A DNA stretch of 64,000 nucleotides from Oopsacas minuta (Eukaryota > Animalia > Porifera): contig JAKMXF010000318.1 in NCBI GenBank assembly GCA_024704765.1, positions 248,001 through 312,000 on the forward strand, written 5' to 3'. Shown here piece after piece: positions 4,636-64,000 of the stretch; position 1 is the first letter of the stretch; the number at the start of each line of letters is the position of its first letter. Under the pieces are notes generated by a model, which saw nothing but the letters and a program-made list of their open reading frames with translations, was not told where the DNA came from and made no database searches. A program made the translations under genes and the position numbers.

Positions 4636-4879
4636 CTATTTATTTTATCATATTAATTACAGTTTAAACTCTACAAACGGACGCCTTGCCCGCCGTAAAT
4701 ACTACCCCGTTTCCCCCGTTTATTGACGTTCATTTGGCCGGACTAGATATTCACTCTATTTATTTTTCACTCCGTTTCTAGAAGTTCCCCGATTCCACAC
4801 CGTTTGTGGAGGTTTTACTGTAATATAAGTGTAGAACAATAACTATAAATGATAGCTTATCTTTACAACACACAAGAAT

Positions 4880-9300: not shown

Positions 9301-9948
9301 GACAGATACCAACAGTATTGTACAACACAGGGTGTAACTGTGTATGAAAGGCTACTTGGTCTACTACCTGATTTAGCTATTGAAAATGAACTGAATTTAT
9401 CCAATAAAATGATACCATCAGTAGAGCTTGGTCATTTGTTCAAATGCTTATCAGCTCAAGGACATTTAACCAAATTAGATCTGAGTAGTAATAAGATAGG
9501 AGATGAGTGTATGAAAATACTAGCTACTTCCCTACGTAATCTCAATACACTTCAGTGTTTAATACTGGGTTGTTGTAATATTTCTTGCAAAGGTGTTACA
9601 GCCATTCTCACACAAATTGTCACTCAACAGACTGCTAACAAACCTCTTAATAATCTCATGCATTTAGATATGAGCTTTAACTTCATCTGTGGAGATGGGG
9701 GAAGGGCCCTGTCGCAATTTCTAACACACATGCCTAACCTTGTCTTCCTCAAACTAGAATCTTGTGGACTTGATATTTGTACTGATTTCTCTCTCCTATC
9801 ACGATCTATCTGTGAATTACGTTCTCTAAAGGATCTATCGCTTATCTTCAACAAAATATCAGAGTCTGATATTAATATTTTACTTCAATCATTATCAAAT
9901 CAGGTAACACTTAATTTATCTCATAGCAAAGATACTCTTAAATTTTAA
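6368..9948 (+). CDS. TONSL: Tonsoku-like protein; exons 6368-7706, 7760-8017, 8105-9948
   Basis: TPR array, acidic linker, ankyrin repeats (GETKLHQAAI, GWSPLHEACNFG, GITPLHDAV), ubiquitin-like segment, LRRs; GT-AG introns of 53 and 87 nt (both phase 1) join three ORFs in frame. Confidence 0.92.
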
Positions 9949-10067
9949 TAATTTGATTATTCACTATTTGTGTTTTCACTCAATAAAGTAAATAAATACT
10001 ATCTTTAGAGTACTTATCAACTGTTGTTTTATCACACATAACTTATTCATACATTCGTTACTAGAAT

Positions 10068-12071: not shown

Positions 12072-12179
12072 ATTTATTAGTATACAAACTTAATGATTTC
12101 CTAAAATTTCTATATTATCTTCCTATGCTTTTTGCTTTCAAATATCTCACTATATAAATACAATATTTCTAGTTTATCA

Positions 12180-13634: not shown

Positions 13635-13735
13635 TCTATGTTGTGTAAGCTATTTGTTTAATTATGAATGAGATACTTACATGCGTTTTGATGTACAATA
13701 ATTTCAAAATGTAGTTACTGTAGAGTTTGTAAGAT

Positions 13736-14662
13736 ATGGTACAAGTTGACACTTATAATAGATGCCTAGATGCTTGGATAGAGAGATTGCATAAATGCCA
13801 ACCCCTTGAAGAGAAGCATGTAAAAATACTTTGTGAGAAAGCAAAAGAAATACTCTCCAAGGAATCCACGGTTCAAGAGGTGAAGTGTCCTGTTACTGTA
13901 TGTGGAGATGTACACGGACAGTTCTATGACTTGATGGAGCTGTTTCGCATCGGAGGAGGTAGTCCTAACACTAACTATCTCTTCATGGGAGATTACGTAG
14001 ATCGTGGCTATTACTCAGTAGAGACTGTGAGTCTGTTGGTATGTCTAAAGACCAGATATCCACAACGTGTTACTATTCTACGTGGAAACCATGAATCTCG
14101 TCAGATTACACAGGTATACGGATTCTATGATGAGTGTTTGAGAAAATACGGGAATCCAAACGTGTGGAAATATTTCACTGATCTATTTGACTATCTTCCT
14201 CTAACAGCACTGGTAGAAGGACAGATATTCTGTCTACACGGTGGTCTATCTCCTTCTATAGATACACTAGACCATATTCGTAGTCTAGATCGTATACAGG
14301 AAGTACCACATGAAGGTCCAATGTGTGACCTACTTTGGAGTGACCCAGATGACCGCTGTGGATGGGGCATTGGTTGGGGAAGTGGGTACACATTTGGACT
14401 GGACATATCAGAACAATTCAATCACTTAAATGGACTAACACTGATATCACGTGCTCATCAGCTGGTCATGGAAGGGCATAACTGGTGCCACGAGAAACGT
14501 GTAGTCACTATTTTCAGCGCGCCAAACTACTGTTATCGCTGTGGCAACCAAGCTGCGTTCTTGGAATTCGATGAACAGATGAATAACAAATGTACACAGT
14601 TTTTAGCTGCTCCTAGAATTCCTGATCAGTTACCACCTAAACCTATTACAAAATATTTCTAA
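13736..14662 (+). CDS. PP2A catalytic subunit paralogue, divergent copy
   Basis: GDVHG, GDYVDRG, GNHE, HGG, RAHQ and YCYRCG are present; WGIGWGSG replaces WGISPRGAG; ends ITKYF rather than DYFL. Confidence 0.9.
13829..14361 (+). repeat. 533-nt direct repeat, identical to 15014-15546 (PP2A core)
   Basis: Line-by-line comparison found no mismatch at offset 1185; a second identical 50-nt block is 14507-14556 = 15695-15744. Confidence 0.9.
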
Positions 14663-14793
14663 TACTTGTATATTTTTGTTTATTACTTTCAATTCTTATT
14701 TATAAATAGAAAACACACCTTCGACAAATGCTATAATTACACACTGGGTTTGGTTAACTAGAATGAGGAGGTGTGTTGATCATAGGTTGCTCT

Positions 14794-14807
14794 TATTGAC
14801 GTCAATA
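14794..14807. promoter_or_regulatory. 14-bp palindrome TATTGACGTCAATA containing a full CRE, about 115 nt upstream of PP2A copy 2
   Basis: Exact TGACGTCA at 14797-14804 in intergenic DNA; function inferred only. Confidence 0.4.
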
Positions 14808-14920
14808 TACTGGGTATCATATTGTATTTATATTTGGTAGAGTGTTGATGCAACTATATTATATCAAATTTCTAGTAAATTACGTGCCTTTGTATATTGA
14901 AATTTAATTAGTGCATTATA

Positions 14921-15853
14921 ATGGTAGAAGATCGTGTTTGGGCCAGTTCGCTCGATGGTTGGATTGAGAAATTGCAGAATTGCCAGTTTCTAGATGAGAA
15001 GGATGTAAAAACTCTTTGTGAGAAAGCAAAAGAAATACTCTCCAAGGAATCCACGGTTCAAGAGGTGAAGTGTCCTGTTACTGTATGTGGAGATGTACAC
15101 GGACAGTTCTATGACTTGATGGAGCTGTTTCGCATCGGAGGAGGTAGTCCTAACACTAACTATCTCTTCATGGGAGATTACGTAGATCGTGGCTATTACT
15201 CAGTAGAGACTGTGAGTCTGTTGGTATGTCTAAAGACCAGATATCCACAACGTGTTACTATTCTACGTGGAAACCATGAATCTCGTCAGATTACACAGGT
15301 ATACGGATTCTATGATGAGTGTTTGAGAAAATACGGGAATCCAAACGTGTGGAAATATTTCACTGATCTATTTGACTATCTTCCTCTAACAGCACTGGTA
15401 GAAGGACAGATATTCTGTCTACACGGTGGTCTATCTCCTTCTATAGATACACTAGACCATATTCGTAGTCTAGATCGTATACAGGAAGTACCACATGAAG
15501 GTCCAATGTGTGACCTACTTTGGAGTGACCCAGATGACCGCTGTGGGTGGGGGATATCCCCTAGGGGAGCTGGTTACACGTTTGGACAGGACATATCCGA
15601 TAACTTCAATCACAATAACGCTCTTACACTCATAACACGCGCTCATCAGCTTGTCATGGAAGGGTATAACTGGTGCCATGAGAAACATGTAGTTACTATT
15701 TTCAGCGCGCCAAACTACTGTTATCGCTGTGGCAACCAAGCTGCACTCATGGAATTAGATGACGTACTAAAGTACACATTCTTACAGTTCGACCCAGCCC
15801 CGAGACGTGGGGAACCTCTGGTGACAAGACGTATTCCTGACTACTTCCTATGA
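14921..15853 (+). CDS. PPP2CA: PP2A catalytic subunit, canonical copy
   Basis: All PPP motifs, [23 protein letters not shown]-terminal RRIPDYFL; alpha/beta distinction not meaningful here. Confidence 0.95.
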
Positions 15854-16114
15854 CGTCATAATTTACATCTAATAAGATAATGTGTGTTTAGGAGTTAGTA
15901 TAGATTGTAACACTGAATGAAGCATGTTATAATTAACTATTTACCCCTCTAACTGTCTCGTAATGTTGTTTTGTGAACAATTATCTTGGTCTGTAACCGA
16001 GTAGAACTGTCATAAACAAGTAATATTTTAAGAGAAATAAATTATGTATAATATATTTATTAGTTATTTTTAGATTATCATAAACATATATTTTGATTAT
16101 TCTCTTAGCCAGTT

Positions 16115-17161
16115 ATGTCATACAACTACTCTCAGGATCCTACCTACGGTACTCCAGCTCCGACCCTGTATTCCAATCCCGTTCCTACTTACGTCCCTCC
16201 TGTACCCATGTACAACCCTGCTCCTATTTATGATCCTACTCCTCAACCCATTTATAACCCAGCTCCATCTCAATACACCCCAGAACCTACCTTCGATAAC
16301 ACACAATATCAGAATTCTTATCAACCACCAAAACAGGATTATATGGACTATTCAACTAATACTCAGAGTAGTTATGAATTTGATTATCAACAACAACAAC
16401 CACAGTATCAACAGCATTCCATACAACCACATATGTTCCTAGGACAGATGGCTTCTAACTTATCCGGTGATACTTTAGCTACTACAGCTCTACAATATGG
16501 CCCTACTCTAGCAGCTTCTGGAAAGCAATTCCTAGACAATAAGCTTGATAGTTTCACCTCAGATAGCAGAGGTGTGTATAAGAGCTATTGGGACGTAGAT
16601 ACCACCTACGTATTGAAGAAGCTAGCTTATCTACTGGTACCATTTTCTTATGATACCTCAGATAGCTTCACTCCCTCTCCCTCTACTCGCTCTCTCAATG
16701 CACCAGATCTATACATACCCTCTATGTCATTTGTAACATACATCCTTATGGTAGGTTATGTGCTAGGCACTCAGGGTAGATTTGCTCCTAACTTATTAGG
16801 TATCACAGGAACCTCTGCATTAATATGGCTGTCAATTGAGATAAGTATTTCCTTGGTAGCAACTTATCTTACTGGAATGTATTCTTCAGGCTTATGGCAC
16901 CGTTTGTGTGTATTGAGTGGATATAAGTTCTTCTATATGGTGTGTTGTATTGGAGTATTTGGTGTCCTTGGTGCTTTTGGCTATTATATCAGTTTCCTGT
17001 TAACTGCATTATCCAGCATTTTATTCACAGTTAACAGTCTTAAAAGTGTATTTGACGCTCAGCTAAACTCTCCTAACAAACTATACCTTAATATCGCGAT
17101 AGCTCTTATACAGCCTCTGATGGTATACTGGTTAACATGGCATCTAGTGCATTACACGTGA
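16115..17161 (+). CDS. YIF1: YIF1 family ER-Golgi membrane protein with a Pro/Tyr/Gln-rich N-terminal extension
   Basis: YWDVDTTYVLKKL..LLVPF, NAPDLYIPSMSFVTYIL, LSGYKF, multiple TM helices. Confidence 0.9.
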   Translation: MSYNYSQDPTYGTPAPTLYSNPVPTYVPPVPMYNPAPIYDPTPQPIYNPAPSQYTPEPTFDNTQYQNSYQPPKQDYMDYSTNTQSSYEFDYQQQQPQYQQHSIQPHMFLGQMASNLSGDTLATTALQYGPTLAASGKQFLDNKLDSFTSDSRGVYKSYWDVDTTYVLKKLAYLLVPFSYDTSDSFTPSPSTRSLNAPDLYIPSMSFVTYILMVGYVLGTQGRFAPNLLGITGTSALIWLSIEISISLVATYLTGMYSSGLWHRLCVLSGYKFFYMVCCIGVFGVLGAFGYYISFLLTALSSILFTVNSLKSVFDAQLNSPNKLYLNIAIALIQPLMVYWLTWHLVHYT

Positions 17162-17340
17162 AGGGAGGGTAGTATTTGTTTCTTATATATCAATGCAATT
17201 GAATTAGGTGTGTGTTAATTGTTCTTATATATATTCAATTAATTCATATTTGCATTCTTTATAAGTAAGGCCAGTTCTACCCTGGCAACCATCTTTTACA
17301 TAAAATATGTAAATTTTATAATTTTTATAACAGCTGTTTT

Positions 17341-18399
17341 ATGAGCCCAGTGCGTATAAAGAGAAGATATATCATATTAGTGGTGGGTGTGGGCCTAATA
17401 ATACTCTTTGCAGTTACGCAATTTCGGTGTTACGAATCCAGTGATGATACAAACTATGATATCTTGAAATTTGAAAGGGAATTAATAGCTAGGAACTTTC
17501 TCATAGAGCTGTTGAACGATATAGACACAAAAGATGATTCTTATAACAGTGACGTAATAGAATTAATTGATAGGGTGACGCAATGGAATGTGAATCATGA
17601 TATAATGAGGCAGATAATATTCGTGGGCGGTGTCCCGAGGAGTGGAACTACTCTAATGCGAGTGTTATTAGACGCACATAAGAATATTTCATGTGGTCAA
17701 GAGACAAGGATCATTCCTCGTATTTTGAAGATGATATCTCAATGGAATAAATCGAGTAAAGAAGTGCAGAGATTGGATGAAGCTTCTCTAGATGAGAATG
17801 CGATTAATAGAGTAATGGGTGTTATGTTTATGCAAATATTTCGCGAGCAGTCTGAAGGCACACCTGAACACTTCTGTAACAAAGATCCTTTCAATTTAGC
17901 ACACATACACGATTTAGAGAATATTTTTCCAAACGCGAAATTTATTTTAATGATTCGTGACGGAAGAGCAGTAACACATTCCATCACGACACGAGGTGTT
18001 ACAATTTCCGGTGTAGATATTAGAAGTGAAGAAAAGGTTCTTGGTTTCTGGAACTCAGCCTGTGAAAACATGATACGTGAATGTTCTTATATAAATCATA
18101 AATACGCACACCCCCACTGTTTAGAGGTATTCTATGAAAAATTGATAAGTGATACGGAGAGAGAGCTAAAACGAGTATTCACATTCTTGGATATAACCTG
18201 GGATAATAGGATATTACACCACGAACAATTGGTAGATAACGGGGGAATAAAGTTATCTAAATTGGAACCTTCTAGCAAGCAAGTATCTAAAGCTATTTAT
18301 AACGAATCTCTTTATAAATGGAGATCAGAACTATCTCCACGGTTTTTAGTAAAAGCTCACGAATCAGCGCCTTTATTAGCACGACTCGGCTACACATAA
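17341..18399 (+). CDS. TPST: Protein-tyrosine sulfotransferase
   Basis: Type II signal anchor; IFVGGVPRSGTTLMRVLLDAH, CGQETRIIP, CNKDPF, MIRDGRA, YEKL. Confidence 0.93.
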   Translation: MSPVRIKRRYIILVVGVGLIILFAVTQFRCYESSDDTNYDILKFERELIARNFLIELLNDIDTKDDSYNSDVIELIDRVTQWNVNHDIMRQIIFVGGVPRSGTTLMRVLLDAHKNISCGQETRIIPRILKMISQWNKSSKEVQRLDEASLDENAINRVMGVMFMQIFREQSEGTPEHFCNKDPFNLAHIHDLENIFPNAKFILMIRDGRAVTHSITTRGVTISGVDIRSEEKVLGFWNSACENMIRECSYINHKYAHPHCLEVFYEKLISDTERELKRVFTFLDITWDNRILHHEQLVDNGGIKLSKLEPSSKQVSKAIYNESLYKWRSELSPRFLVKAHESAPLLARLGYT

Positions 18400-18549
18400 T
18401 AAATCATATTTTACTCGAACACATAATCCTCAGATGAGCAGCAGTAATGACTTAGACTGTATATATGTTGTATAATGTGTAACAATAATATTTGTGTATA
18501 TCGTTAATCTTAATTTTTGTTTATTAATCTGTTTGAATACACAACTAGA

Positions 18550-19043
18550 ATGGCTAAATTTATCCAGAAAGCTAAGTCTAGATTCCACTTCGCTACACAG
18601 GGAGGATCTGGTACTGTACTCGGTGCTTCGAGTGACCCAAAATCTCCTCAACCTCAACTTCCTTCTCCTGTCACTACTCAGCCTGCAGCTAGACCGTAAG
18701 TTAATATACTTACCTAAGCTTATGTATTATTGCTATTCCTTGTGTTATTATAGAGAGAGCAGTTCTTCTAAAACAGCTGGAGAAGCTGCCTTAGCTCGCT
18801 ACGAGAATAAAACCACAGGACAGAAACCACGACCTGTTACTACGAGCTCGGGTCCGGTTGCTAGGAAAGAGATAGGAATGTTGAGGGAAGCTAGAAGAGA
18901 AATAGAGAGAGAGAAGCCTCCTCAAGATAACACAGATAAAGTAGCAGTTAAGATAGCTAAGAAATTAACAATAGATCAATCTAATGAGCCTGTTAGAAGT
19001 ACTGTAGGAACAGCTAGGGTACTCGTTGATTGTCCTCTAACAG
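18550..19043 (+). CDS. UBXN6: UBXN6/UBXD1 exons 1-2 (18550-18695, 18754-19043)
   Basis: MAKFIQKAK start, VIM-like AGEAALARYE, ends VLVDCPLT-G; 58-nt phase-2 GT-AG intron; donor CAG|GTTAG at 19044. Confidence 0.85.
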
Positions 19044-19137
19044 GTTAGCTAATAGTAATACCATTATGCTCTACATAGGTGGATAACTAATATGGCAGAT
19101 AACTATTCGTATGCTTTTAGTAAGAATTAGAGTTTAA

Positions 19138-20397
19138 ATGTCTGAATTGACTCATCGCATAAAATCTATGGATAAAGCTACCAAGCCTGAGCCTCAAGCA
19201 GGAGAGAGGATACCTACTAATCCAGTAGTATCTAATTGCTCTGTGTGTATGAAAATACTCATTTCTCTCCTTGTTGTTATCGTATCAATCATAATCGCCA
19301 TTCCTTCTCCTATTTCTCCTGTCTCTTATACTCTTTCTGCTGCTAATCCCAATCTATCAGATGACGTTACCAATATCCTTAAAGTATCTGAGAAGATTCA
19401 TCTACCAGGCTGTGAGTCTGTTGTAATAGACTCTAACGGATATATATACACAGGGACTTATAACGGATTGGTTGTACAGATATCTCCTGATTTCTCTGAA
19501 GTCAGACCCCTGATACGTACAGGCTCTGCTCCTGTAGACGATGATAAGTGTAATAATAGCTCTCTAGCTGATAACGTCACTGATTGTGGGAAGGTTATGG
19601 GAGTTCGTATGCTGAATGAAGATACTCTGATTGTGGTAGATTCTATGTATGGAATATTCTCTATTTCTATAAAACTCAAGTCTAAGACCCTTCTATTCGA
19701 TCTCAAGAATCAACCTGAGTACCTAGACATACCTATAATTCTCCCAAACAGTGTAGTTATACTACCAGATGATAACAGTTTATTATTCACTGATTCTTTC
19801 ACTAAATTTACTCAAAAGAGAGGCATACTTGCTTTAATAGAACACGGCACAGATGGTAGAGTGTACAAATATGATTTTAACACGCGGAAAGTAACACTTT
19901 TCCTCTCAAACTTACACTTCCCTAACGGAATAGAGCTCCATAGAGACGGAGAATCAATCTTAATAGCAGAATTCTCTATTTGTCGTATAATTCGTTATTA
20001 CTACAGAGGAAATAAGAAAGGGACGACAGAGATATTCAGTGACAACTTTATTGGGGTACCGGACAATATCCAGAGGGCGAGAGGGAGTGGGTATTGGGTA
20101 GGGGTCCCCTTAGAACGAGATAATGTGTATGACGTAATGCTTAAGTACCCAATAATAGGATCTCTTATAACTAAGCTATTTGATGCTGAATTCCTTGAAA
20201 AACAAACTACTACTAATTTTGGGAAGGGGATTGCTGTGAAGTTGAGTGAGGAGGGGGAGATGTTAGAATTCGTGTATGATCCCGAAGGGGAACATGCCTA
20301 TTTCGTCACCGAGGCTGTAGACAGTGATAATGGATTCCTATACTTCGCTTCATTCTCAGGGGACTATTTCGTACGAACCTCGTATCCTATTCAATAA
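19138..20397 (+). CDS. APMAP: Strictosidine-synthase-like / APMAP-like beta-propeller, nested on the same strand in UBXN6 intron 2
   Basis: N-terminal TM, GCESVV, CGKVMGVR, LPNSVV, FTDS, DGRVYKYD, LHFPNGIEL, GVPDNI. Confidence 0.8.
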   Translation: MSELTHRIKSMDKATKPEPQAGERIPTNPVVSNCSVCMKILISLLVVIVSIIIAIPSPISPVSYTLSAANPNLSDDVTNILKVSEKIHLPGCESVVIDSNGYIYTGTYNGLVVQISPDFSEVRPLIRTGSAPVDDDKCNNSSLADNVTDCGKVMGVRMLNEDTLIVVDSMYGIFSISIKLKSKTLLFDLKNQPEYLDIPIILPNSVVILPDDNSLLFTDSFTKFTQKRGILALIEHGTDGRVYKYDFNTRKVTLFLSNLHFPNGIELHRDGESILIAEFSICRIIRYYYRGNKKGTTEIFSDNFIGVPDNIQRARGSGYWVGVPLERDNVYDVMLKYPIIGSLITKLFDAEFLEKQTTTNFGKGIAVKLSEEGEMLEFVYDPEGEHAYFVTEAVDSDNGFLYFASFSGDYFVRTSYPIQ

Positions 20398-20517
20398 TAA
20401 TACGTATTAACATTTAGACAACACTAGAATGTGATTATCATGCTTTTTCGTTATTTTATATGTCTATATATAGTACAGTATGTTGTTGTGAATACTGTTT
20501 ATGAATTTATTTTATAG

Positions 20518-21488
20518 GAAAAACAATAGAGTATGGACAGAGACTATCTCATCTCCAGAACGCACTACAGGACATGTACCTACAGGAACCTCTGTACGCC
20601 TCCTGTCTCATGATACACACCCTAGGTACAAACTCCCCACTCACTACTCATCTAGTAGGTACTAGTGTGGGACTAATAGAGAAGGATAAATTGACTGCTT
20701 GCATAGAAACAATCAATAAATGTTTGAAGAATATTCTAGAACATCCTGATGAAGATAAGTACAGAAGTATACGATGTGAAAGTAAAGTACTCAAAGATAA
20801 AGTATTGCCTGTTACAGGATCAGAGCTATTCCTCAGTTCAGTAGGATTTGTACAAGAGCTGAATGACTATCAGGGAAACGAAGTGTTATTCTACGTTCTA
20901 GCTAAACCCAAAAATGTTGATGAAGTAGCTACACAGATGGAACACTTGACTACTGCTTTTGATATGTTGAATAATGTGACTCCTGTAAAGTTAGAATTGA
21001 ATAGAGACATACATGTATATAAAGCTACGTCATCAGTTAACAGATTCCCAGAACTACCTTCATCATTCTTTATCCTAAAACCGGAAGAAGTTATGAAAGA
21101 GAATCAGCTGAGAAGAGAACAGGTGGAGATTAATGAGATGTTATTAACTCGTGCTCAGAGAGAGAGACTAGAACAACAAACTACTAGACAGTATCAGTTC
21201 TGTGTGGTAAGAGTCAGATTGCCGGAAGGAATAGTTCTGCAAGCAACTTTCAGAGCTAAAGAGAAACTGAGTGATTTGTTTTATTTCCTAAGTCAGTCGC
21301 TTAGAAACGAAGCTATGCAATTTTCATTATTTCATCAGGGTGGTAAGAAATTAGAAAATATGAATCTATCTCTCCAAGAAGCTGAGCTAGTCCCTGCCGC
21401 ACTCGTGAACTTACGTATTGACTTAGGTTCACAGACTGATGCAATTCTAAAACCATCCTTAATGAGAAATATTGAAAGAATGAGCTAA
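20518..21488 (+). CDS. UBXN6: UBXN6 3' exon(s): PUB and UBX domains
   Basis: Acceptor TTTATAG|GA at 20517 restores CPLTGKTIEYGQRLSHLQNAL; PUB (NILEHPDEDKYRSI), UBX (VRVRLPEGIVLQATF, LVPAALV). Confidence 0.9.
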
Positions 21489-21742
21489 TTGATTCTAGGA
21501 TGGCACGAACCACTGAATTATTTGTTTTTCATACTACGTCACTGGAATTAATTACTGAGAAACTCAAATTGTTAATTAATTGACTCACCTTGTATGGTAG
21601 TGACATATATGTCAATGATTGCTTGCAACTTCATATTTATGAAGAGATAGCTACATGTTTGGTATAAAAGTGTGCTATAGCTGAAGTTGTATAAATTCTC
21701 TGCATTTTTGTTTCGATATTATACACATATATTATATTATTA

Positions 21743-23020
21743 ATGGCTTCTAATATTACTGAATTTGAGAGTTTTGAGACTTTGGTAGAGAAGCTCCGTC
21801 AGGAAATCAGATGCAGATGTCACGAGTTAGTATGGATTATACAGACAAGAGAGTCAGAGCTGTTGAAAGAATTAGAATCAATTGCTATACCCCAAAAGGA
21901 TCGGAAGAGACAGGAAGGAAAATTAAAAGAACTCAGAGATCTCTATGACCTGAATGAACGTAACTTCAGATCTAACGAGCTACAAGCTGTACAGCAGAAT
22001 ATTCTAGAGGGATTGAGTAATGAGATTAACAAGTTAAAGAAAGAATTAACTCTCCCATATGGTTTCTCTTATAACCCAGATATTGTTCAAAATCTGAGAG
22101 ATTTCGGTGAACTTAAGACGATTGTAGCTAAACAGCCTATTCCACCAGTTCCATCCTACAAACCTCCTCTTCCATCAAGTACAATTGTGCCTAAGCCTGC
22201 TGTCTCTGTCTACAGCACGATAACGCATCCTATATACGGTGTGTGCAATAAAGGAAATGGAAGCGAGGATCTGGATAGAGCATGGGGTATAGATATACAC
22301 TATCCAACAGGGAATATATTCATAGCGGATCAATGTAACCATAGGATACAGGTATTTAATGGGGACGGTGTACATCTACTCACGTACTTAGTCTCATCGG
22401 GTAGAGGGCAGATGAAATGGCCAATATGTCTAGCAATACATAATGATAAGCTATTTGTCAGTCAGCACGGTAACGATTGTGTAACTGTATTTGGAATGAA
22501 GGGCTCTTTCGTAAACCAGTTCGGAAAGTCAGGCAAGAAGAACGGAGAGTTCAAATCTCCTCGTGGAATAACCATGGAGGAAATGAGTGGAGACATTTTC
22601 GTATGTGACTACGGTAACAACAGAGTACAGGTATTCACTGGAGATTACAAATTCAAGTCTAAATTTGGTATATTTATCCATCCTATGTGTATACAGCTAT
22701 CTGGTACCTGTATTATCGTACTAGATGAAGGGAACCCTTGTTTGCATATTTATAATCTTAACCAAACTCTGAAGAGAAGCATTATCAGCAATGGACTGTT
22801 TGGACAAGTACGGTCTCCAAGGACATTCTGTCTAGACTCTATTGGGAATATTCTAATGACGGATAATGACTGTAATTGTATATGTATCTTCAATCCAGCG
22901 GGAGTACTCGTCCACCAGATTACCAAGGGTGTTCTAAGACCCGTAGGGGTCACACTTGACACCAGAGGTCGGATAGTACTCGTATCTCATCGTGACGATG
23001 ACTGTCTACAATTCTTCTAA
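21743..23020 (+). CDS. Coiled-coil + NHL-repeat beta-propeller protein (TRIM-NHL-like, no RING/B-box)
   Basis: N-terminal coiled coil, Pro-rich linker, NHL repeats (AWGIDI..IFIADQCNHRIQVF, SPRGI..IFVCDYGNNRVQVF). Confidence 0.85.
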   Translation: MASNITEFESFETLVEKLRQEIRCRCHELVWIIQTRESELLKELESIAIPQKDRKRQEGKLKELRDLYDLNERNFRSNELQAVQQNILEGLSNEINKLKKELTLPYGFSYNPDIVQNLRDFGELKTIVAKQPIPPVPSYKPPLPSSTIVPKPAVSVYSTITHPIYGVCNKGNGSEDLDRAWGIDIHYPTGNIFIADQCNHRIQVFNGDGVHLLTYLVSSGRGQMKWPICLAIHNDKLFVSQHGNDCVTVFGMKGSFVNQFGKSGKKNGEFKSPRGITMEEMSGDIFVCDYGNNRVQVFTGDYKFKSKFGIFIHPMCIQLSGTCIIVLDEGNPCLHIYNLNQTLKRSIISNGLFGQVRSPRTFCLDSIGNILMTDNDCNCICIFNPAGVLVHQITKGVLRPVGVTLDTRGRIVLVSHRDDDCLQFF

Positions 23021-23109
23021 TATTATCTATACATGTATTCTATATATTGTTGGTTTGAGTAGTGTAAATATTTGCAACTAAACATTATTAATTTTTATTC
23101 AACAGTGCA

Positions 23110-24642
23110 ATGTTTTCTGACGCAGAAACACAAGTAGTAGATATAATCTCCAGATGGTTATATTCTAAATCTAAAGATGATAACTCTACTCAGACGGCTA
23201 ATATACTCATTACTTCACAAGGGTGTAATTCTACTGAGCTAGCAGAGGTACCATGTCAAACTGATGAGACAATAGTGGAAGATAAGGAGATGGCAGAGGA
23301 TAGCAACCCTTCTGCTACATTGGAATTCCTCCTTAGAGTAGAGCCTGAAATTACAAAGATTCTAAAGCAGAATTTGCTTAGTCATGCATTTGATAGTTGT
23401 AGTCTATCTTGGGATAATATAACTCCTGATAAGAAAACAGGACCTCTATTCACTCTTAAACACAAACCCCCATCTGATTCAGAGACTGACATGCCAGTAA
23501 CAGCTTTGACATGGAGTGCTACTGGGAGTGTTATAGCAGCTGGTTACGGACACTTCAACCATATTGACCTGTGTTGGCACAAATCTAGTTTATTAACATG
23601 GAATCTGGATAGACACGCTTCTAAAGCAGCTGATCCTGATACAAGTCTACTAGTAGATAATTGTATTATGTCTCTAGCATTTCATCCTGAGAGAGCTGTT
23701 ATACTGACTGGGGGGGTGTTCAATGGTAATATTATAGTGTGGGATCTGGGTAGAGAGGATGAACATGCAGTAGTTAGTACTTTTCTATTACAATTTGGAC
23801 ATACAGATCCAGTTAATCAGATTCAATGGATAAAATCAGGAAATAAATCTAGACTCAAACAGTATAATATACTCAGTTTTGGTGGAGATGGTAGGATTAT
23901 TATATGGGAGGTAGAATTGGTTAAGAAGTCTATTGTACCTATGTTCCAATGCAGACTGGTCACTTCATGTATTCCCAAGAATATACGGGTTAAAAAAGGC
24001 AGAGCTCAAGATGCACTGGGTATCTCTTATGCTGGATTATCCCATGATGACAGCAAGATATTAATAGTAGGCACAGAGGGAGGAAATGTGTTTAAATGTT
24101 CTCTACACGGTATAGTGCTTAAGGAGAGAACACTACTGGATAAAGTAATAGAAGATAGTATTGTTAATCTAGCATTTAAGCCTATTATCGGCCCAATATA
24201 CAGTGTATCATGCTCTTACTTCCACAGAAATATATTCTTAACTTGTGGTACTGATGCTGCTGTGTCTATATACTCTATGCTAGACATTAATCCTATAATG
24301 ATGATACATACTAACTCACATCATTATCTTTTTTGCGCTGAGTGGTCGCCTTTTCGCCCTGGAGTGTTTATTTGTGGGAGTGGTAGTGGTGAAATACTGA
24401 TTTATGATATATGTCATTCACGTCACGTCCCTGTAGATACGATACTAACTAACATAGAGAAGAGACCCGTGTATACTGTGAAGTTTAACGAGAAGAGAAG
24501 ACAACTAGTAGCTAGTGGAGATGGTACGGGTACTGTTGTTATATGGGAGCTAAGTAGTGAGTTGTGTAATCAAAAACAGAATGAGTTAAAAGTTCTAGAA
24601 AGATTACATGCTAATGCACGTGATGTATCACATATTGTATAA
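23110..24642 (+). CDS. DYNC2I2: Dynein-2 intermediate chain WDR34
   Basis: FLLRVEPEITKILKQNLLSHAFD, LTWSATGSVIAAGYG, WD40 repeats, YFHRNIFLTCG, WSPFRPGVF. Confidence 0.88.
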   Translation: MFSDAETQVVDIISRWLYSKSKDDNSTQTANILITSQGCNSTELAEVPCQTDETIVEDKEMAEDSNPSATLEFLLRVEPEITKILKQNLLSHAFDSCSLSWDNITPDKKTGPLFTLKHKPPSDSETDMPVTALTWSATGSVIAAGYGHFNHIDLCWHKSSLLTWNLDRHASKAADPDTSLLVDNCIMSLAFHPERAVILTGGVFNGNIIVWDLGREDEHAVVSTFLLQFGHTDPVNQIQWIKSGNKSRLKQYNILSFGGDGRIIIWEVELVKKSIVPMFQCRLVTSCIPKNIRVKKGRAQDALGISYAGLSHDDSKILIVGTEGGNVFKCSLHGIVLKERTLLDKVIEDSIVNLAFKPIIGPIYSVSCSYFHRNIFLTCGTDAAVSIYSMLDINPIMMIHTNSHHYLFCAEWSPFRPGVFICGSGSGEILIYDICHSRHVPVDTILTNIEKRPVYTVKFNEKRRQLVASGDGTGTVVIWELSSELCNQKQNELKVLERLHANARDVSHIV

Positions 24643-24712
24643 TATGTTATAAAATGAACACTTAAATTGGTATAGGACGTCCAAGGGTGAAAAGGTGGTA
24701 ATTCCAGAATTA

Positions 24713-25424
24713 ACGGGTGAGTACTAAAAAATTAGACAATTTTCATCTTGTTTGAGTATGTAACAATTATCAACAGAGTATTGTATAATTCGATCATATT
24801 TGTTTAATTACATTTTCATTTAGCTAGAACTCAATGGATCGCTGCTAATGGGCCATTGTCTGCAGATTTTCGGATATTCGTCTTGACAATTCTTGTTCGA
24901 GTTTGCTATCTGGGACTCGCTTACATTTACGATATGTAACACCATTCTCTTTGATAATCTTACGAACATATGATTGAGAGATATCGAATTTTCGAGCCAT
25001 TTTTCTGGTGGAGACTCCAATTTTATTGCTAATTTTGCACAATAGAGATCGCCGGAGCCTCTTGGGCATTTTGACAGACTTGCGACCGCTACCCAACTTC
25101 CTGTTTAGGGTTCCTCTATTCTTGATAGTAGAAATGATGTTGTAGATAGTAGATCTTGCGATTCCAAACGCCAAAAAATGCTTAACAGTATAAGAAATCC
25201 CATACTCATAATTTTTACGAAAAAATTGTCCAATAATGTGTCGCCGTTGTGTCACTTTCAAATGATCCATCTCCAGATGCTATGTTCTAAAATAATCGAA
25301 AATGGTTTGAATTTGAAATCTATATACAAGTAATGCATTGGTGAAAAAAAGATTTATGAATTTGGAAATATCTCGTTGTTATGGTGAACTACAAAATATG
25401 TCTGAAAGTTTAGTGCTCACCAGT
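24713..25424 (-). mobile_element. Internally deleted Tc1/mariner-superfamily (maT/DD37D-like) element, 712 bp
   Basis: 26-bp TIRs 24713-24738 and 25399-25424 (20/26 match), TA at 24711-12 and 25425-26; contains a transposase fragment. Confidence 0.8.
24845..25270 (-). pseudogene. Truncated transposase (N-terminal HTH DNA-binding region only)
   Basis: GIARSTIYNII, RKLGSGR, STRKMARKFDISQSYVRKII, YRKCKRVP; no DDD catalytic domain; W-P-like remnant in another frame. Confidence 0.75.
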
Positions 25425-25513
25425 TATTTATGGTTCAGCCACTTTGAATGGCTATATCTCAAAATAATCGGGCCATGTTTAATGTATTGGTTCCTTAATT
25501 AGTTTATAAATTG

Positions 25514-26101
25514 ATGAGTTCGTTCTTGCGACTGTTGTCTATATACTCTCAAAAACAAAGTATTATTTCTAAAACATTGTGCTCCAACTATCTTATATTC
25601 ACTCCACAAGCTAACAGAGCCTCTACTGAAAGTGTATTCCAGTCAATTAACTCTAAACTAACTTTTCAGAGAGATGGACATACTAGTCAATTGGAAAAGG
25701 AATTACCGACATCTGTACCTATAGATTATAAAAAAGTGTTACTGCTAGTAAAGAGTTTTAACTGTATTCACGTTAGGATCACTAAACACAATGTAATCAC
25801 TACTCTCACAACACCAGAGGGAAAACCTCTAGATTTCGCAACCTGTGGGCTGCTTGGCTTCAAGAACGCTAGGAAAAGAACAGAGTTTGCTTCTACTGCA
25901 GTTGGTAAATGTATTGGTGAAAAAGCATTAGCAAAACGTGTCAAACAGGTTCACATAAAGATACAAGGCCTGGCTATGAATAGGAGATTAGCTACTGTTA
26001 AAGGAATTGTCAGTTCAGGACTGAAGGTAATGGCTATAACAGACAACACACCGCTACCCTTTAGTAAGGGTAGGAAACCACCAGCTGTTCGCTCCTTATA
26101 G
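25514..26101 (+). CDS. MRPS11: Mitochondrial ribosomal protein uS11m
   Basis: IHVRITKHNVITTL, CGLLGFKNARKRT, VHIKIQG, ITDNTPLP; basic N-terminal presequence. Confidence 0.88.
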   Translation: MSSFLRLLSIYSQKQSIISKTLCSNYLIFTPQANRASTESVFQSINSKLTFQRDGHTSQLEKELPTSVPIDYKKVLLLVKSFNCIHVRITKHNVITTLTTPEGKPLDFATCGLLGFKNARKRTEFASTAVGKCIGEKALAKRVKQVHIKIQGLAMNRRLATVKGIVSSGLKVMAITDNTPLPFSKGRKPPAVRSL

Positions 26102-26194
26102 GTCAATTAGCAAATAAATAATATTAAATTGTTATTATTTGACAGGGGGTAATAAAGTGTAAAGACATAACAAAGTGGTATAGTATAAAAATAG

Positions 26195-27595
<1,401 letters not shown>

Positions 27596-27671
27596 ATAAT
27601 ACATTATTGTTTATGGGCTATAATTGGTTCAATATTATTCTAATGCTAATTAGTACTTTTAATATTAGACA

Positions 27672-28522
27672 ATGGGAGAAGATTTAGTATACGCGGAGCT
27701 ACCCCCTGATGAGGGATTAGAGATCTACGAGGAGTTGGTTACAGAAATGGGACAGCCTGTTGAAAAACCTGCTCAAACAAATGGACCTCCTCCTGTACCT
27801 TCATCTAATAGACCGCTACCCCAGGCACCCTCACTCCCTGAGAGAAATCAAGTAACGCCACAGAGAGCGCCGCCTATTGCAGGTAAAGGTAATAAATCTA
27901 CCTTTTTTGACCAACAGCCATCACCTACCAAGAGGCCAGCTGCTGCTTTGCCCCCTGTTCCTACTCAACCGGTACATGCAGGAGGAGAGGAGCTCAGGGT
28001 CTCACAGGCCTTCCAGATCTTCATACAGTCCAAGAAGACTGGTACCTCCAAATCACGATACTCTACCCCCTGGGCCAAGAGGACAGATACAAGTGGTCAA
28101 GAGATGGAGTTTATATCTCTACAAGGATCTGATTCTAACATTCCATTTGTACCACCTAATATCCTGGTGAAGATGCCAGAAGCAACTGAAGTAGCTACTG
28201 GGAATTATTTACGTCTTTTCATCCCTCCAGCTTCCTCTTCACAGCAACCTCCACAAAGATCTACAGCTGGTATAGAGATGGAAAACTCTACAGCAGCTGG
28301 AGAGGATGGTCAAGAACTTGTCTATGATGATACAATCAATGCTAACACAGAGGAGACTTATGATGACGTACTTCAAAAACCAGACGTAATACCTAAAACA
28401 GCTGACGATTTTAACCAGGATACACATAATGACGTAAATATTAAACCATCTGAAGAAACGTATGATGACGTAACAGTAAGACAGGAGGATACTTATGATG
28501 ACGTAATCCAAAAACCAAATAA
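27672..28522 (+). CDS. Exon 1 of a FYB/ADAP/PRAM1-like adaptor (Pro-rich region + YDDV repeats)
   Basis: PPPVP and RPLP motifs, repeated (E/D)TYDDV; frame ends at a consensus donor AA|GTAAG (28523, phase 2). Confidence 0.7.
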
Positions 28523-58947: not shown

Positions 58948-59928
58948 ATGGATTCTAATAAAAGCATGGAAGTTATAGACATAACTCAGCCCAGATGGAA
59001 ACAAAACACATTTCTGGGACGTTTCAAACACTTCACAGAGCTTACTCATCCTAAACACATGTTCCATTCCTCTAATAGACTCAATAAGGCTGACAAGATA
59101 ATATCTGGTTATAAATCTGGAGAAGATAACTCTCTACAAAAGCTAAGTATCAAAGAACAATGGAGAATAAAATACATTTATGACAGTGCTTTCCATCCAG
59201 ACACAGGCGATAAGATGTTACTTCCATTCCGTATGTGTGCACAGATTCCCTCAGCTATTTTAATAGTATCGGGCATACTCACGTATCACCATACACTGAG
59301 TGGAGTATTATTCTGGCAATGGTTCAATCAATCATATTGCGCTACACTTAACTTTACAAACAGAAACGCTACTTCTAAAGTAACAAATAAACATATCCTT
59401 ATGGCATATACCTCTGCTACTACCGGGGCAGTAGCTGTATCAGTATTACTGAATAGGATGGTTACTACTACTCATTCTCTATCTGGTAGACTGGTACCTT
59501 TTCTAGCTATAACTATGGCTAATGCTATTAATATACCTCTCATGAGGCAGAATGAGCTAAAGGATGGAGTTACTGTTTCTACTGAAGGAGGAGAGAGTTG
59601 TGGGAGTTCTAGGCGAGCTGCAGCTGTTGGAATATTTCAAACTCTCCTCGGTCGATTAGTATTTGCAGGTCCCTCGTTCATATTCTCTCCTATAATATAT
59701 ACACGACTTATACGTCACTTCCCTATTCTACACGCAAGCAAATCTCTGTCAATTATAATACAAGGACTCCTGACAGGACTTCTATACATACCCTCTATTC
59801 CATTAGGATGTAGTTTGTTCCCCCAGAGATCTCACTTATCAGTAAACTCATTAGAACATAATGTCAAGCAGTGTGTACAGCGTAAACACCCTAATGCTAA
59901 ATATGTTTATTTCAATAAGGGCTTATAG
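58948..59928 (+). CDS. SFXN: Sideroflexin (mitochondrial tricarboxylate/serine carrier family)
   Basis: QPRWKQNTFLGRFKHF, DSAFHPDTG, PFRMCAQIP, FWQWFNQS, ends YFNKGL. Confidence 0.93.
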   Translation: MDSNKSMEVIDITQPRWKQNTFLGRFKHFTELTHPKHMFHSSNRLNKADKIISGYKSGEDNSLQKLSIKEQWRIKYIYDSAFHPDTGDKMLLPFRMCAQIPSAILIVSGILTYHHTLSGVLFWQWFNQSYCATLNFTNRNATSKVTNKHILMAYTSATTGAVAVSVLLNRMVTTTHSLSGRLVPFLAITMANAINIPLMRQNELKDGVTVSTEGGESCGSSRRAAAVGIFQTLLGRLVFAGPSFIFSPIIYTRLIRHFPILHASKSLSIIIQGLLTGLLYIPSIPLGCSLFPQRSHLSVNSLEHNVKQCVQRKHPNAKYVYFNKGL

Positions 59929-60020: not shown

Positions 60021-60920
60021 ATGTCAGTTCCAGCTGATTCTGATCGTGTATGTACTACCTTCCCGAAGGTTAAGGAGGTAAGGGCCTATATCAAGGACTC
60101 CGAGAAGGGAGGACAAGTTGGACAAGGAGGGGATTGTCATGATGTACCCACGGGACACTGGATAGGCGGGAGTGCTCCCCACATGCCAATCGCTAACCCT
60201 ATGTCTGGATACGAGATGTACGAGGACGACCGGAATTCTTGGGGTATCGGAGCTCTAGGCAGTCTGGTAGTTGAGGTAGAGACGACAGAGGGGGACAAGG
60301 GGGTGGGGGTGAGTCTAGGGGGAGAGGCAGGGTGCTATATCGTAGAGAAACACCTCTCAAGGTTCGTAGAAGGACAGAACCCAGCTGATATTGAGCTCAT
60401 GTGGGATCAAATGTATAAATCTACTATCAATTATGGAAGAAAAGGATTACCATTACAAGCTATTAGTGCTGTGGATTTAGCTTTGTGGGATCTGTTAGGA
60501 CATTTGAGGAGAGAGCCTGTCTATCAGATGCTGGGGGGCAGAACCAAGCCTTATCTACCTGTATACTCTACTACATGTGATGCTCTACAGGCTAAGAAGT
60601 TTGGGTTCGTTGGTGCTAAGATAGGATGTCCTTACGGTCCTAGTGCAGGGGGGGAGGGGCTGAAGAAGAACGTAGAAATGTTCAAAAATACTAGGAAGCA
60701 GGTTAAGTAATAATATCTATTGGTTATATACTCCTGGATTGAATGCTGTAATACAGGTAGGAGATGAATTCCCTTTGATGCTTGACTGCTACATGGCTCT
60801 AACACTATCATACTCTATACAGCTAGCTAGAGAACTTAAGGATCTTAAGTTCAAGTGGATAGAGGAAGCATTACCCCCTGATGATTATCAGGGATACAGA
60901 GAACTTACTAGTGTTTGCAG
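60021..60920 (+). CDS. L-rhamnonate dehydratase-like enolase-superfamily gene; exons 60021-60701 and 60757-60920; 3' part absent from this window
   Basis: GGDCHD..HWI..PIANPMS, GSLVVEVE, GCYIVEKHLSRFVEG, SAVDLALWDLLG, LMLDCYM, WIEEALPP; 55-nt phase-0 intron; ends at donor CAG|GTAAGA. Confidence 0.85.
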
Positions 60921-60991
60921 GTAAGATAAATACTTGTCATAAATTTGATTGTATATATAAGTGTCAATCAATAACATACGATAGAGATAGC

Positions 60992-61540
60992 TCAGTGTTT
61001 GTGTTCTCTGGATAGGAGAGATACACCCTTGATTAGCGTGTGGTCTGCTACTTCATCTTGATAACTAGCTGTTGTTAGTACTGTAGCTGTTACAGGGAGA
61101 ATCAATGTATTGATTTCTGAGATAATCTCTAAATTGTGTTCCACATGTCCTTGTCCTATCTCTCCCATAACTCCCACAGGTACTGCATACACTTCTATCT
61201 GGAATGAAGAACTCATACCAGCAGCAATTGGATGTGGAGTGTATATGATCTTTATACCGGTAGAAGGAGGAGGTGGCTTAATCTTATATCTATAATAAAT
61301 ACTAAATAACTTAGCTATCAGATAGCTATATAGTCAATACCTTGTACTTCTTATTCCAGTATTCTTTATGATTACTGTGTAAGAATAATTGCATCCTTCC
61401 TCCAGCATTCCAAAGTCTACTTCTGTCTCTAGGAGACTGATCCCCTGCTTCAGATTCTTGGAGAGGGGCATAGATAGAGAGGCAGTGTTTAGTTGCCTCT
61501 TGGTCTCATCTATGCACTCTCTATCTCCAGGTCTCAATGT
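60992..61540 (-). CDS. SPAG17: SPAG17 last two exons (61341-61540, 60992-61289)
   Basis: DFGMLEEGCNYSYTVIIKNTG-R-YKIKPPPPSTGIKIIYTPHPIAAGM..HNLEIISE..LPVTATV; 51-nt phase-2 intron. Confidence 0.82.
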
Positions 61541-61830
61541 CTATAATAATAATAATAAGCAATAATGTTATAGCAGCTCACGATCTGGTTCGTGACTATT
61601 GTATCTATGGTTTTTTGTTTAAATTGCAATAGAGTCACGAGAAATTACATTATTCATTAAGTTCACAAGCCTGAGAGTCTTGTGATAGTATTTAAATGCT
61701 TCTAATTATGAATTACGTAATGGTAATATACAAGGAATGCTAAATTGACTAAAATAGTTATAGGGATTGGTAACCGAGTTCGTTAGGTATATATTCGAGA
61801 ATTCAGTAATATGCACACCAAACTGATTCA

Positions 61831-62679
61831 ATGGAAGTTATCTCTGTTCCTTTATCTACCCCCTCAAACTCTGAGAAAGAGTTTAGGAAGATGGATGAAG
61901 ATCCAGATTCTGCTCCCGAGCTAGTCAAAGAAACTTACAGAAAGATGCACACTTTCCAGACCGTTGAGTTTGGGAAGAAAATGCGAGAGAAGTGGGGCAA
62001 ATACAATTACTGTGAAATGACAGTTATGGAAGCACTGGACACATTGAATGAGTTGGTGGATGAGAGTGACCCTGACTTTGTAGGACTGCCCAATAACTAC
62101 CATGCATTCCAGACGGCAGAACTGTTGCGTAGATACAACCCAGATTTAGATTGGTTACATGTAGTAGGACTTATACATGACATGGGTAAGGTGATAGGAC
62201 TAGTGGATCCTGATACAGAGCAGTGGGCACTTGTAGGGGACACATTTCCTGTAGGGTGTGAACCTCAGAAATCTGTGGTATTTCAGAATCTAGGATTTCC
62301 TGAAAATCCTGACACCAAAGATCCTCGTTACAACACTAAGCTAGGAATGTATCAAGAGAACTGCGGACTAGATAACGTAATGATGTCATGGGGACATGAT
62401 GAATACTTGTACAGAGTACTCAAGAACCATGTTAATATGAAACTACCAGATGAAGCTCTGTTCATTATCAGGTACCATTCATTTTATCCGCTACACCATC
62501 GAGATGATTATCAGTATCTACTCAGTGATGCTGACAAAGATAAGATAAAGTTGGTTAAATTATTCCAAAAATTTGATCTATACAGTAAGGAAAAAGATGC
62601 TATCCCAGAGGTAGATCAGCTGAAGGATTATTACCAGAAGCTCATAGACAAATATGTCCCTGGTAAGATAAAGTTCTGA
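61831..62679 (+). CDS. MIOX: myo-inositol oxygenase, nested antisense in a SPAG17 intron
   Basis: VDESDPD, HAFQTAE, LIHDMGK, VGDTFPVGC, SWGHDEYLY, IRYHSFYP, DLYSK. Confidence 0.95.
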   Translation: MEVISVPLSTPSNSEKEFRKMDEDPDSAPELVKETYRKMHTFQTVEFGKKMREKWGKYNYCEMTVMEALDTLNELVDESDPDFVGLPNNYHAFQTAELLRRYNPDLDWLHVVGLIHDMGKVIGLVDPDTEQWALVGDTFPVGCEPQKSVVFQNLGFPENPDTKDPRYNTKLGMYQENCGLDNVMMSWGHDEYLYRVLKNHVNMKLPDEALFIIRYHSFYPLHHRDDYQYLLSDADKDKIKLVKLFQKFDLYSKEKDAIPEVDQLKDYYQKLIDKYVPGKIKF

Positions 62680-62775
62680 CTAGCTTATCTCTCTCTTACT
62701 AGCTTATATCCTCGCTAGCTAACTTATTTATTATTCACGAATATCATACGTAATGTTAGTTACTTTAGTATTTAC

Positions 62776-64000
62776 CTTTAGAGAGTTGGGTAGTTTAACT
62801 GGTGCTGTTCTGGGAATTCCTGCTACGTTATAGAATAAATACTCAGGTATAGGGTTAGCCGTATCCTCAGCTCCTGCTGCTACTGGTGTAGCTTTATTAG
62901 GACGGTCTGTATCTGTATCTATTGGCGGTAGCTTAGAGGGAGAGAACACAGGACTCTCCTCTGTAGTGACTATACTAGGATCAGCTGATGTAGATATATG
63001 AGGTGATGGGTTATCAGGACGATCTCTAGCTAGAGATACAGTAGATGTAGAGTTATCTGGGAGTAGAATAGTAGTGCTAGCATAACCTGGGACTAACTGT
63101 CCAGCTTCTTGAGATAGCTCTGATAGACGTGGGTTAATCAATCTCTCAGATTTAAGGACAGGTTCAGGAGGGGTATTACCACGACCTCTACGCATTGCTA
63201 TAGGGAGTTCATCTGTTAGACGCTGTATATCAGGGGGATTGTTCTGTAGAAATTTGTTACCATCTTCGCTATAGAAATAACCAGGTATATCTTTTGTACG
63301 TAATGCTTGCAGGTTAGCTTGAAACTCTTCCAGCTCTGCTCTATCAGCTTCTACTCTCTCAGGCCTTCTCTCAGAGGATGCGTGTATTGTCTCCTGAGTA
63401 GGAGGTGATAGCACTAGGTCCTTGAACTCTTGTATCAGTTTATCATCATTATCTTCTGTGTGTATATTATATCTATTGAATATGTCAGTAGCTTGTTCTT
63501 GTACTGAGTCAGTTTTTATCTCTACAGGAGAGAAGGAGTCTCTCTCCTTATTTATTTCATCCCACCAGGAATTAACTGCATTCAAGCTAGCTACAAAAGC
63601 ACTCATCATTTCCTGCCCAATTGGTTTATGTTCTAACAACTCTCTGCGTCTAAAACCGCGAGGAACCTTCTTATTCTCTGTACGTCTAACAACAGTTCCT
63701 ATATCCAGGCCACGACCCACCCCGCTACCAAATACCATATCTTTATCTTTCTCACATTTGTTTAAGCCTAGAGGGAAATAATACTGAGTCCTCAGGTTTA
63801 TAGGTATAATGTCATCCTCTGTATAAGGGAGGTGTGTCAACTTGTGAGAGGGAGTGTTAATAGGACTAATAACGGAGTGTACAATAACAGTAGAGTCTCC
63901 AGGGAGAGCATGTGATTGTAACAACATCCCATCTTTAGCACGCCATCTCTCCAATTCCTTTCCTGAGTATTCCTTGCTGAGCAGTTCTATGCCAGATCCG
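62776..64000 (-). CDS. SPAG17: SPAG17 internal exon running off the right edge
   Basis: Frame open to the window end (GSGIELL...), EDDIIPINLR, FGSGVGRGL, NVAGIPR..VKLP; phase-0 donor AAG|GTAAAT at 62775 (alternative at 62763). Confidence 0.75.

Follow-up and report, generated by a model that had tools for sequence, protein, structure and literature searches.

One intron of the human NF1 gene harbors OMG, EVI2A and EVI2B, i.e., several complete genes lying on the strand opposite to that of their host, with a single level of nesting; both that gene and that intron are very large. Russian-doll structures, in which a gene lies within a gene that itself lies within a gene and several guests can share one host, have been reported in Drosophila (Assis et al., 2008, as cited in Assis, 2016, PMC5174743). 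In glass sponges, nested genes are abundant and often conserved: 2,432 of them (12.4%) are counted in Aphrocallistes vastus, while the annotation of Oopsacas minuta lists only 83, a figure attributed to the annotation method (PMC10282587). The present work concerns a stretch of 64,000 nucleotides (nt) of the O. minuta genome, referred to below as the window (C318:248001-312000, C318 being contig JAKMXF010000318.1 of an assembly of 61,460,524 bases in 365 contigs), and a gene resembling that of L-rhamnonate dehydratase (RhmD) that starts near the 3' end of this window. The initial annotation of the window had predicted that the second intron of this gene spans the whole of SPAG17, with the myo-inositol oxygenase gene MIOX inside the latter, and the analysis reported here upholds that prediction: with a probability that can be put at about 0.92, the glass sponge carries a real nest of three levels, a "Russian doll", at this locus.

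The outermost level is the L-rhamnonate-dehydratase-like gene (hereafter the host), with three exons and a second intron of 9,680 nt. The second level consists of SPAG17 and of a CmcI-like methyltransferase gene, both located in intron 2 on the opposite strand, and the third of two single-exon genes on the host strand, MIOX and a TRAF4-like gene, each sitting in one of two SPAG17 introns. As in NF1, several complete opposite-strand genes are found in one intron; unlike in NF1, nesting goes beyond a single level. The CmcI-like gene and the TRAF4-like gene, the latter in a second SPAG17 intron, make the nest richer than predicted. The locus shares with the Drosophila nests the gene-within-gene-within-gene arrangement and the presence of several guests in one host. 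However, the Drosophila hosts tend to be long genes with many long introns, whereas the host here is a small gene for an enzyme, interrupted by two introns, and belongs to a genome of 61 Mb whose introns are usually ~50 nt long; moreover, its intron is ~99% filled and the layout is kept across relatives whose synonymous divergence is saturated. With the nested genes of glass sponges it has in common a compact genome, single-exon genes in introns and the conserved microsynteny with O. minuta, while neither this locus nor multi-level nesting is described in the excerpt considered of that report (PMC10282587). Glass-sponge nesting and Russian-doll nests having both been described already, the locus is a new and well-supported member of a known phenomenon, and what is distinctive about it is the combination of three levels, four guests, ~99% intron occupancy and deep conservation. 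It offers a clean three-level nest, with RNA and comparative support, from an animal that branched early and whose genome is very compact, and such loci are test beds for the coexistence of splicing, polyadenylation and transcription of interleaved genes.

The DNA located 3' of the window was fetched, and positions there are given in two coordinate sets, L004 (C318:308001-318000) and L005 (C318:318001-328000), while bare numbers of five digits are window positions. The host model was searched exon by exon, and its 448 codons are the sum of the exon lengths (681 + 164 + 502 = 1,347 nt, i.e., 448 codons and a stop), not a joined protein. Exon 1 (60021..60701, + strand, 227 codons, phase 0) is open from the ATG at 60021, ends with the donor CAG|GTTAAG at 60701|60702 and encodes the N-terminal capping domain (PF02746 MR_MLE_N, E-value 5.7e-11); it aligns with residues 4-206 of the PDB entry 2oz3 (E-value 6.9e-60) and also with the L-rhamnonate dehydratases 2i5q, 2p3z and 3fxg. 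Intron 1 (60702..60756, + strand) is a 55-nt GT..AG intron. Exon 2 (60757..60920, + strand) counts 54 codons and 2 nt, its product running VGDEFPLMLDCY...WIEEALPPDDYQGYRELTSVC before these 2 nt (C-terminal end also given as KWIEEALPPDDYQGYRELTSVC) and the exon itself ending in ...GTGTTTGCAG; it carries the metal ligands of LMLDC and WIEEA, and matches positions 41-92 of the 219-position MR_MLE_C profile (PF13378) as well as residues 207-256 of 2oz3. The ORF (open reading frame) of the dehydratase is intact and spliced up to a donor at 60921, as had been claimed, this donor being CAG|GTAAGA with its GT at 60921-60922.

The initial annotation had also noted that some 130 C-terminal amino acids (aa) of an RhmD were missing from 60921-64000 and had placed the last exons beyond the window, behind a phase-2 acceptor. 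Coding sequence for GEH, QPD and PHG was looked for in 60921-64000 and none was found, and the search that it had proposed, along the + strand further downstream, led to one exon that encodes all three. This exon 3 (L005:601-1102, C318:318601-319102, + strand) comprises 1 nt, 166 codons and the stop codon TAG (L005:1100-1102). Its acceptor, ttattatttag|A at L005:600|601, is in phase 2, and its first base finishes a split codon AG|A (Arg). Intron 2 occupies 60921..64000 in the window and as a whole C318:308921-318600 (L004:921-L005:600, + strand, 9,680 nt). The exon 3 product, QLGILVTTGEHEY...IQPDITW...IPHGSS... up to the stop (frame also read as QLGILVTTGEHEYTRYGYKQLLESPSACDVIQPDITWMGG...NTPVIPHGSSVYSYH...), matches positions 96-218 of PF13378 (E-value 2.2e-23), residues 263-395 of 2oz3 and residues 271-390 of the Gibberella rhamnonate dehydratase 3fxg (E-value ~1e-38, also given as 5.9e-39). 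Scanning the whole genome in six frames with PF13378 returned 3 matches, among which a same-strand pair is formed by exon 2 (profile 40-92) and C318:318599-318982 (profile 93-218, E-value 4.3e-22), whose halves abut exactly. Within the whole genome, the domain is completed only by this second match, which lies 9.68 kilobases (kb) further 3' on the strand and contig that carry exon 2.

The three exons are colinear on 2oz3 (4-206, 207-256, and 263-395), and LMLDC, WIEEA, GEH, QPD and PHG each line up with their counterparts in 2oz3, 2i5q and 3fxg. The full domain set of the RhmD group is present, namely the MR_MLE_N capping domain and the MR_MLE_C barrel, with the barrel split over exons 2 and 3. 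Regarding the catalytic residues, Asp (LMLDC) and Glu (WIEEA) belong to exon 2, while Glu (GEH), Asp (QPD) and His (PHG) belong to exon 3; we take the positions of the metal ligands and of the His-Asp dyad to be those of RhmD, and alignment to the RhmD chains matches them here. Since the catalytic residues are divided between exons 2 and 3, neither part alone could, on this alignment, work as an enzyme. The best matches of all three host exons are RhmD structures (2i5q, 2p3z, 3fxg, 2oz3), with which capping and barrel domains, the three ligands and the His-Asp dyad align; unlike them, the host comes from an animal, has spliceosomal introns and encodes a conserved tail of ~35 aa at the C-terminus. 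It is, by similarity, an L-rhamnonate-dehydratase-like gene of the enolase superfamily.

Reads from five sequencing runs, none of which is recorded as RNA, were aligned to L004:1-6000. Judging by their behaviour, X1 and X2 are DNA of the source sample and X4 is RNA-like material of the same sample, while X5 is ~96% identical DNA from another organism (organism B). We infer from its spliced contigs, very uneven depth and TruSeq adapters that X4 is RNA. In X4, a contig (depth 903) skips host intron 1, and two contigs ending at 60920 carry on with ACAGCTGGGAATACTGGTTACTACA, i.e., 25 letters identical to L005:601-625 and found once in the fetched DNA, at that very place. The depth of X4 is zero at the intron 2 positions listed, 60933-60950 (L004:933-950), which no X4 contig covers. 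This shows that the mature host RNA joins exon 2 to exon 3 at 60920|L005:601. The 3'-truncated pseudogene that had been proposed as an alternative for the host is rejected by exon 3 together with the RNA junction to L005:601-625.

The public annotation treats the host as two genes. KAI6649790.1 (282 aa, 'L-galactonate dehydratase-like') corresponds to host exons 1-2 plus one read-through codon, and KAI6649797.1 (129 aa, 'Mitochondrial enolase superfamily member 1-like') to a part of exon 3 taken from an internal Met, the names given by NCBI to the fragments being 'L-galactonate dehydratase-like' and 'ENOSF1-like'. It could accordingly be proposed that the truncated 282-aa fragment and the independent 129-aa fragment are separate genes or relics, and that the genes between them are mere neighbours and not nested at all, the more so as reading past the exon 2 donor meets a stop after one codon. 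However, X4 contigs join 60920 to L005:601, neither fragment has the full set of metal ligands together with the His-Asp dyad, and the 129-aa model, by starting at its internal Met, omits the conserved GEH and QPD encoded just upstream in exon 3. In addition, the splice sites, the phase and the split Arg codon are kept in relatives, and both host parts have a ratio of nonsynonymous to synonymous substitution rates (dN/dS) of ~0.03-0.10, which makes the two-gene model very improbable. With the host taken as a single three-exon gene, KAI6649790.1 and KAI6649797.1 are to be merged in the public annotation; as long as one gene is modelled as two fragments, the nest is not visible there. More generally, prediction programs that allow no nesting find too few genes in glass sponges and cut genes short.

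The junction is present in RNA, and no other arrangement restores the reading frame and the full set of catalytic residues; the host messenger RNA would accordingly arise through conventional cis-splicing, in which the donor at 60920|60921 is used with the acceptor at L005:600|601. A single host precursor would then cross SPAG17 and the methyltransferase gene in antisense, and MIOX and the TRAF4-like gene in sense; as the latter two would be crossed together with their 3'-end signals, host polymerases would have to ignore these signals. The guest genes would use promoters of their own, and because a host polymerase would cross four transcription units, collisions and promoter occlusion could be expected to cause interference between host and guest expression. 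Alternatively, two pre-mRNAs transcribed separately, one with exons 1-2 and the other with exon 3, could be joined by trans-splicing, with no polymerase crossing the guests. Contigs cannot show the precursor, and spliced-leader trans-splicing has been reported in glass sponges (PMC10282587). Nevertheless, the donor and the acceptor follow each other on a single strand of a single contig and are canonical in every relative, animals routinely cis-splice introns of 9.7 kb, and no separate promoter or leader was seen for exon 3, so that trans-splicing is considered unlikely. Several points weigh against the nested locus as read here. X4 comes with no RNA record, and its RNA nature is deduced from its features only. 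For the exon 2-exon 3 junction, the data are two contigs of short reads, which approach it only from exon 2 and extend 25 letters past it; such contigs do not make a full-length transcript and do not tell cis- from trans-splicing. Finally, the borders between SPAG17 exons 1, 2 and 3 are deduced from GT..AG sites and frame.

Evidence independent of X4 comes from related assemblies (ENA ERZ20067936, ERZ25766962, ERZ25072740, ERZ25072730, ERZ25069837, and ERZ23490157/ERZ23489137, counted as six). In all six, gene order and strands are identical as far as the contigs reach, the succession being sideroflexin (+), MR_MLE_N (+), the 3' end of SPAG17 (-), MIOX (+), SPAG17 (-), TRAF (+), SPAG17 (-), CmcI (-), MR_MLE_C (+) and an NSE2-type zinc finger (-). 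Amino acid identity of the host with these relatives is 80-85% for exon 1, 76-87% for exon 2 and 73-82% for exon 3, with no stops. The position of intron 1 is kept, its length varying from 47 to 484 nt, and intron 2 measures 9,753-11,704 nt. In every relative the splice sites of intron 2 read xxG|gt[ag]ag at the donor and tag| at the acceptor, with the phase kept. Three genomes have AG|A as the split codon, and three have CG|G; as both encode Arg, the codon differs on both sides of the junction and still specifies the same residue. Synonymous differences amount to a proportion of 0.56-1.0, i.e., saturation, whereas dN/dS is 0.02-0.10 on each exon, and GEH, QPD, PHG, LMLDC and WIEEA are invariant in five to six relatives. 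That the guests fill ~99% of the intron and that the genes interlock may be the reason for so fixed a layout.

This conservation also bears on the possibility of an assembly artefact, in which the SPAG17 block with its guests would have been misplaced inside the dehydratase gene. Nothing was found in favour of it, and it comes into question only through the location of exon 3 outside the window. An X1 contig is unbroken over L004:1-3575 and spans the border between exon 2 and SPAG17, which is therefore not an assembly seam; DNA contigs from X1, X2 and organism B (X5) all cross this border, and the same layout recurs in six other assemblies. Such an artefact can be regarded as having next to no chance of being correct. 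Organism B is colinear over L004:7-6000. Its insertions and deletions are small and lie only in noncoding spacers (60933-60950, 61737-61779, and 62720), one of them being a 41-nt deletion upstream of MIOX, while coding parts show substitutions only.

SPAG17, which codes for a protein of the ciliary central pair (PF6), has seven exons on the - strand (L004:992-9576) totalling 5,718 nt, i.e., 1,906 codons for 1905 aa. Pfam was searched for this gene and holds no SPAG17 family; its identity comes from the PDB chain 9ijj_x (2320 aa), with matches at 13-374 (E-value 2.1e-13), 1434-1478 (E-value 1.4e-10), and 2207-2284 (E-value 2.7e-20), in exons 1, 5, and 7, respectively. The last exon, E7 (60992..61289, L004:1289-992), ends with the stop TGA at 60994-60992; as had been pointed out, this minus-strand stop lies 71 nt past the donor of host exon 2. 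E7 is joined to E6 in an X4 contig across a 51-nt intron (61290..61340, CT..AC on the + strand), the loose end at L004:1291 being equal to L004:1343-1362. E6 (61341..61540, L004:1540-1341) is an open frame joined on both sides in X4 contigs, and the intron between it and E5 (61541..62775, 1,235 nt, CT..AC on the + strand) is the one harboring MIOX; X4 joins L004:1540 to 2776, with a loose end equal to L004:1519-1540. E5 (62776..64000 in the window, L004:4836-2776 as a whole) matches residues 1434-1478 of 9ijj_x and is separated by a 51-nt intron (L004:4837-4887, X4 joint from 4836 to 4888) from E4 (L004:5082-4888). Next comes the 1,422-nt intron that harbors the TRAF4-like gene (L004:5083-6504), for which the X4 loose end at 5084 equals L004:6507-6536. 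E3 (L004:8102-6505), E2 (L004:8353-8156), and E1 (L004:9576-8409, residues 13-374) complete the gene, with the E2/E3 and E1/E2 borders placed by GT..AG sites and frame. In total, four of the six SPAG17 introns are removed in X4.

MIOX (61831..62679, L004:1831-2679, + strand) is a single-exon gene of 282 aa that is covered by X4 contigs and matches PF05153 over its full length (profile 3-249 of 249, E-value 1.4e-101). Its six close homologues, 72-84% identical, occupy the same place in the other assemblies, the next best match being at 59%. The TRAF4-like gene (L004:5199-6440, + strand, PF02176), for which X4 contigs are also present, likewise has a single exon. The coding sequences of MIOX and of the TRAF4-like gene each lie inside their own SPAG17 intron, and both introns are spliced out in X4, which accounts for the third level of nesting. 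The CmcI-like gene (L004:9684-L005:580, C318:317684-318580, - strand) is a 299-aa ORF matching PF04989 (Rhamnosyl O-methyltransferase/CmcI), a family typical of bacteria, and is placed between the SPAG17 start and host exon 3; it is kept at this site in all relatives. Its ATG (L005:580-578) lies 20 nt from the host 3' splice site, so that its 5' untranslated region (UTR) and its promoter would necessarily lie across host exon 3 in the antisense direction. SPAG17 and the CmcI-like ORF are wholly contained in the host intron, whose flanking exons are joined in X4 contigs, and from the SPAG17 stop to the CmcI-like ATG they take up 9,589 of the 9,680 bases (~99%), the guest genes beginning 72 nt past the host donor and ending 21 nt short of its acceptor. 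All the ORFs of the nest are intact, and within L004:1-6000, the part examined, X4 contigs are found on host exons 1-2, SPAG17, MIOX, and the TRAF4-like gene.

With regard to the origin of the host, using the exon 1 ORF part of a relative as a query retrieved full-length 'L-rhamnonate dehydratase-like' orthologues of 427-440 aa with 59-69% identity from molluscs, the brachiopod Lingula, the demosponges Amphimedon, Dysidea and Halichondria, the homoscleromorph Corticium and the choanoflagellate Salpingoeca. Because orthologues are so widespread in animals and also occur in a choanoflagellate, the host is, as far as these similarities go, an old gene inherited vertically in metazoans, and a horizontal transfer or recent bacterial import of the RhmD-like gene is rejected on the same grounds. 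Intron positions were read in three outgroups, namely Amphimedon, Dysidea and Pinctada. The Amphimedon orthologue is a 3.1-kb gene with ~ten introns, no guests and other neighbours; neither it nor the Dysidea orthologue, the two demosponges examined, has an intron at either of the host positions of glass sponges. Demosponge orthologues have ~ten introns, while that of the oyster Pinctada (Pinctada imbricata, GCA_033119305.1) is intronless. The intron content of the dehydratase gene varies greatly among animals.

As the demosponge orthologues share no intron positions with the host and the oyster gene has no introns, the giant intron is perhaps of glass-sponge origin. One speculative scenario combines two proposals: intron 2 would have arisen in the glass-sponge lineage, possibly through the capture of a gene block in a coding exon, and MIOX and the host could catalyze consecutive or coupled steps of one sugar-acid route, their expression being linked through host read-through. 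The latter idea rests on MIOX converting inositol to D-glucuronate and sharing its strand with a host that is a sugar-acid dehydratase. Taken together, the two proposals form a conjecture of low probability.

Some further observations concern the guests, the host and the surroundings of the nest. A low-depth X4 contig (52.6) at 61513-61861 runs from SPAG17 E6 through the intron into the first 31 bases of the MIOX coding sequence, and corresponds to either an unspliced SPAG17 precursor or a long MIOX 5' UTR antisense to a SPAG17 exon. The X4 depth is 9,000-28,000 over MIOX (61801-62600), vs. ~430-900 over host exons and ~1,200-1,300 over SPAG17 exons; given that contig depth in X4 cannot rank genes by expression, these figures at most suggest that expression is highest for the innermost gene. 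The third PF13378 match of the genome scan is weak and lies on another contig (C222:203638-203898), within a 443-aa open frame that is probably another enolase-superfamily gene, perhaps of the ENOSF1/L-fuconate dehydratase type. On the 5' side, the nest is flanked by a single-exon sideroflexin gene (58948-59928, + strand), and on the 3' side by a gene of the NSE2/MMS21 type with an SP-RING (L005:1151-1948, - strand) and by a gene for a 775-aa secreted or membrane protein with no Pfam match (L005:2181-4508, - strand), all three neighbours being kept in relatives. Lastly, the dehydratases of glass sponges have in common a C-terminal tail (...NAEYLDSFS.D.EVKPIYPF; L005:602-1099 and exon 3 of the relatives) that is unlike the C-terminus of the Amphimedon protein.

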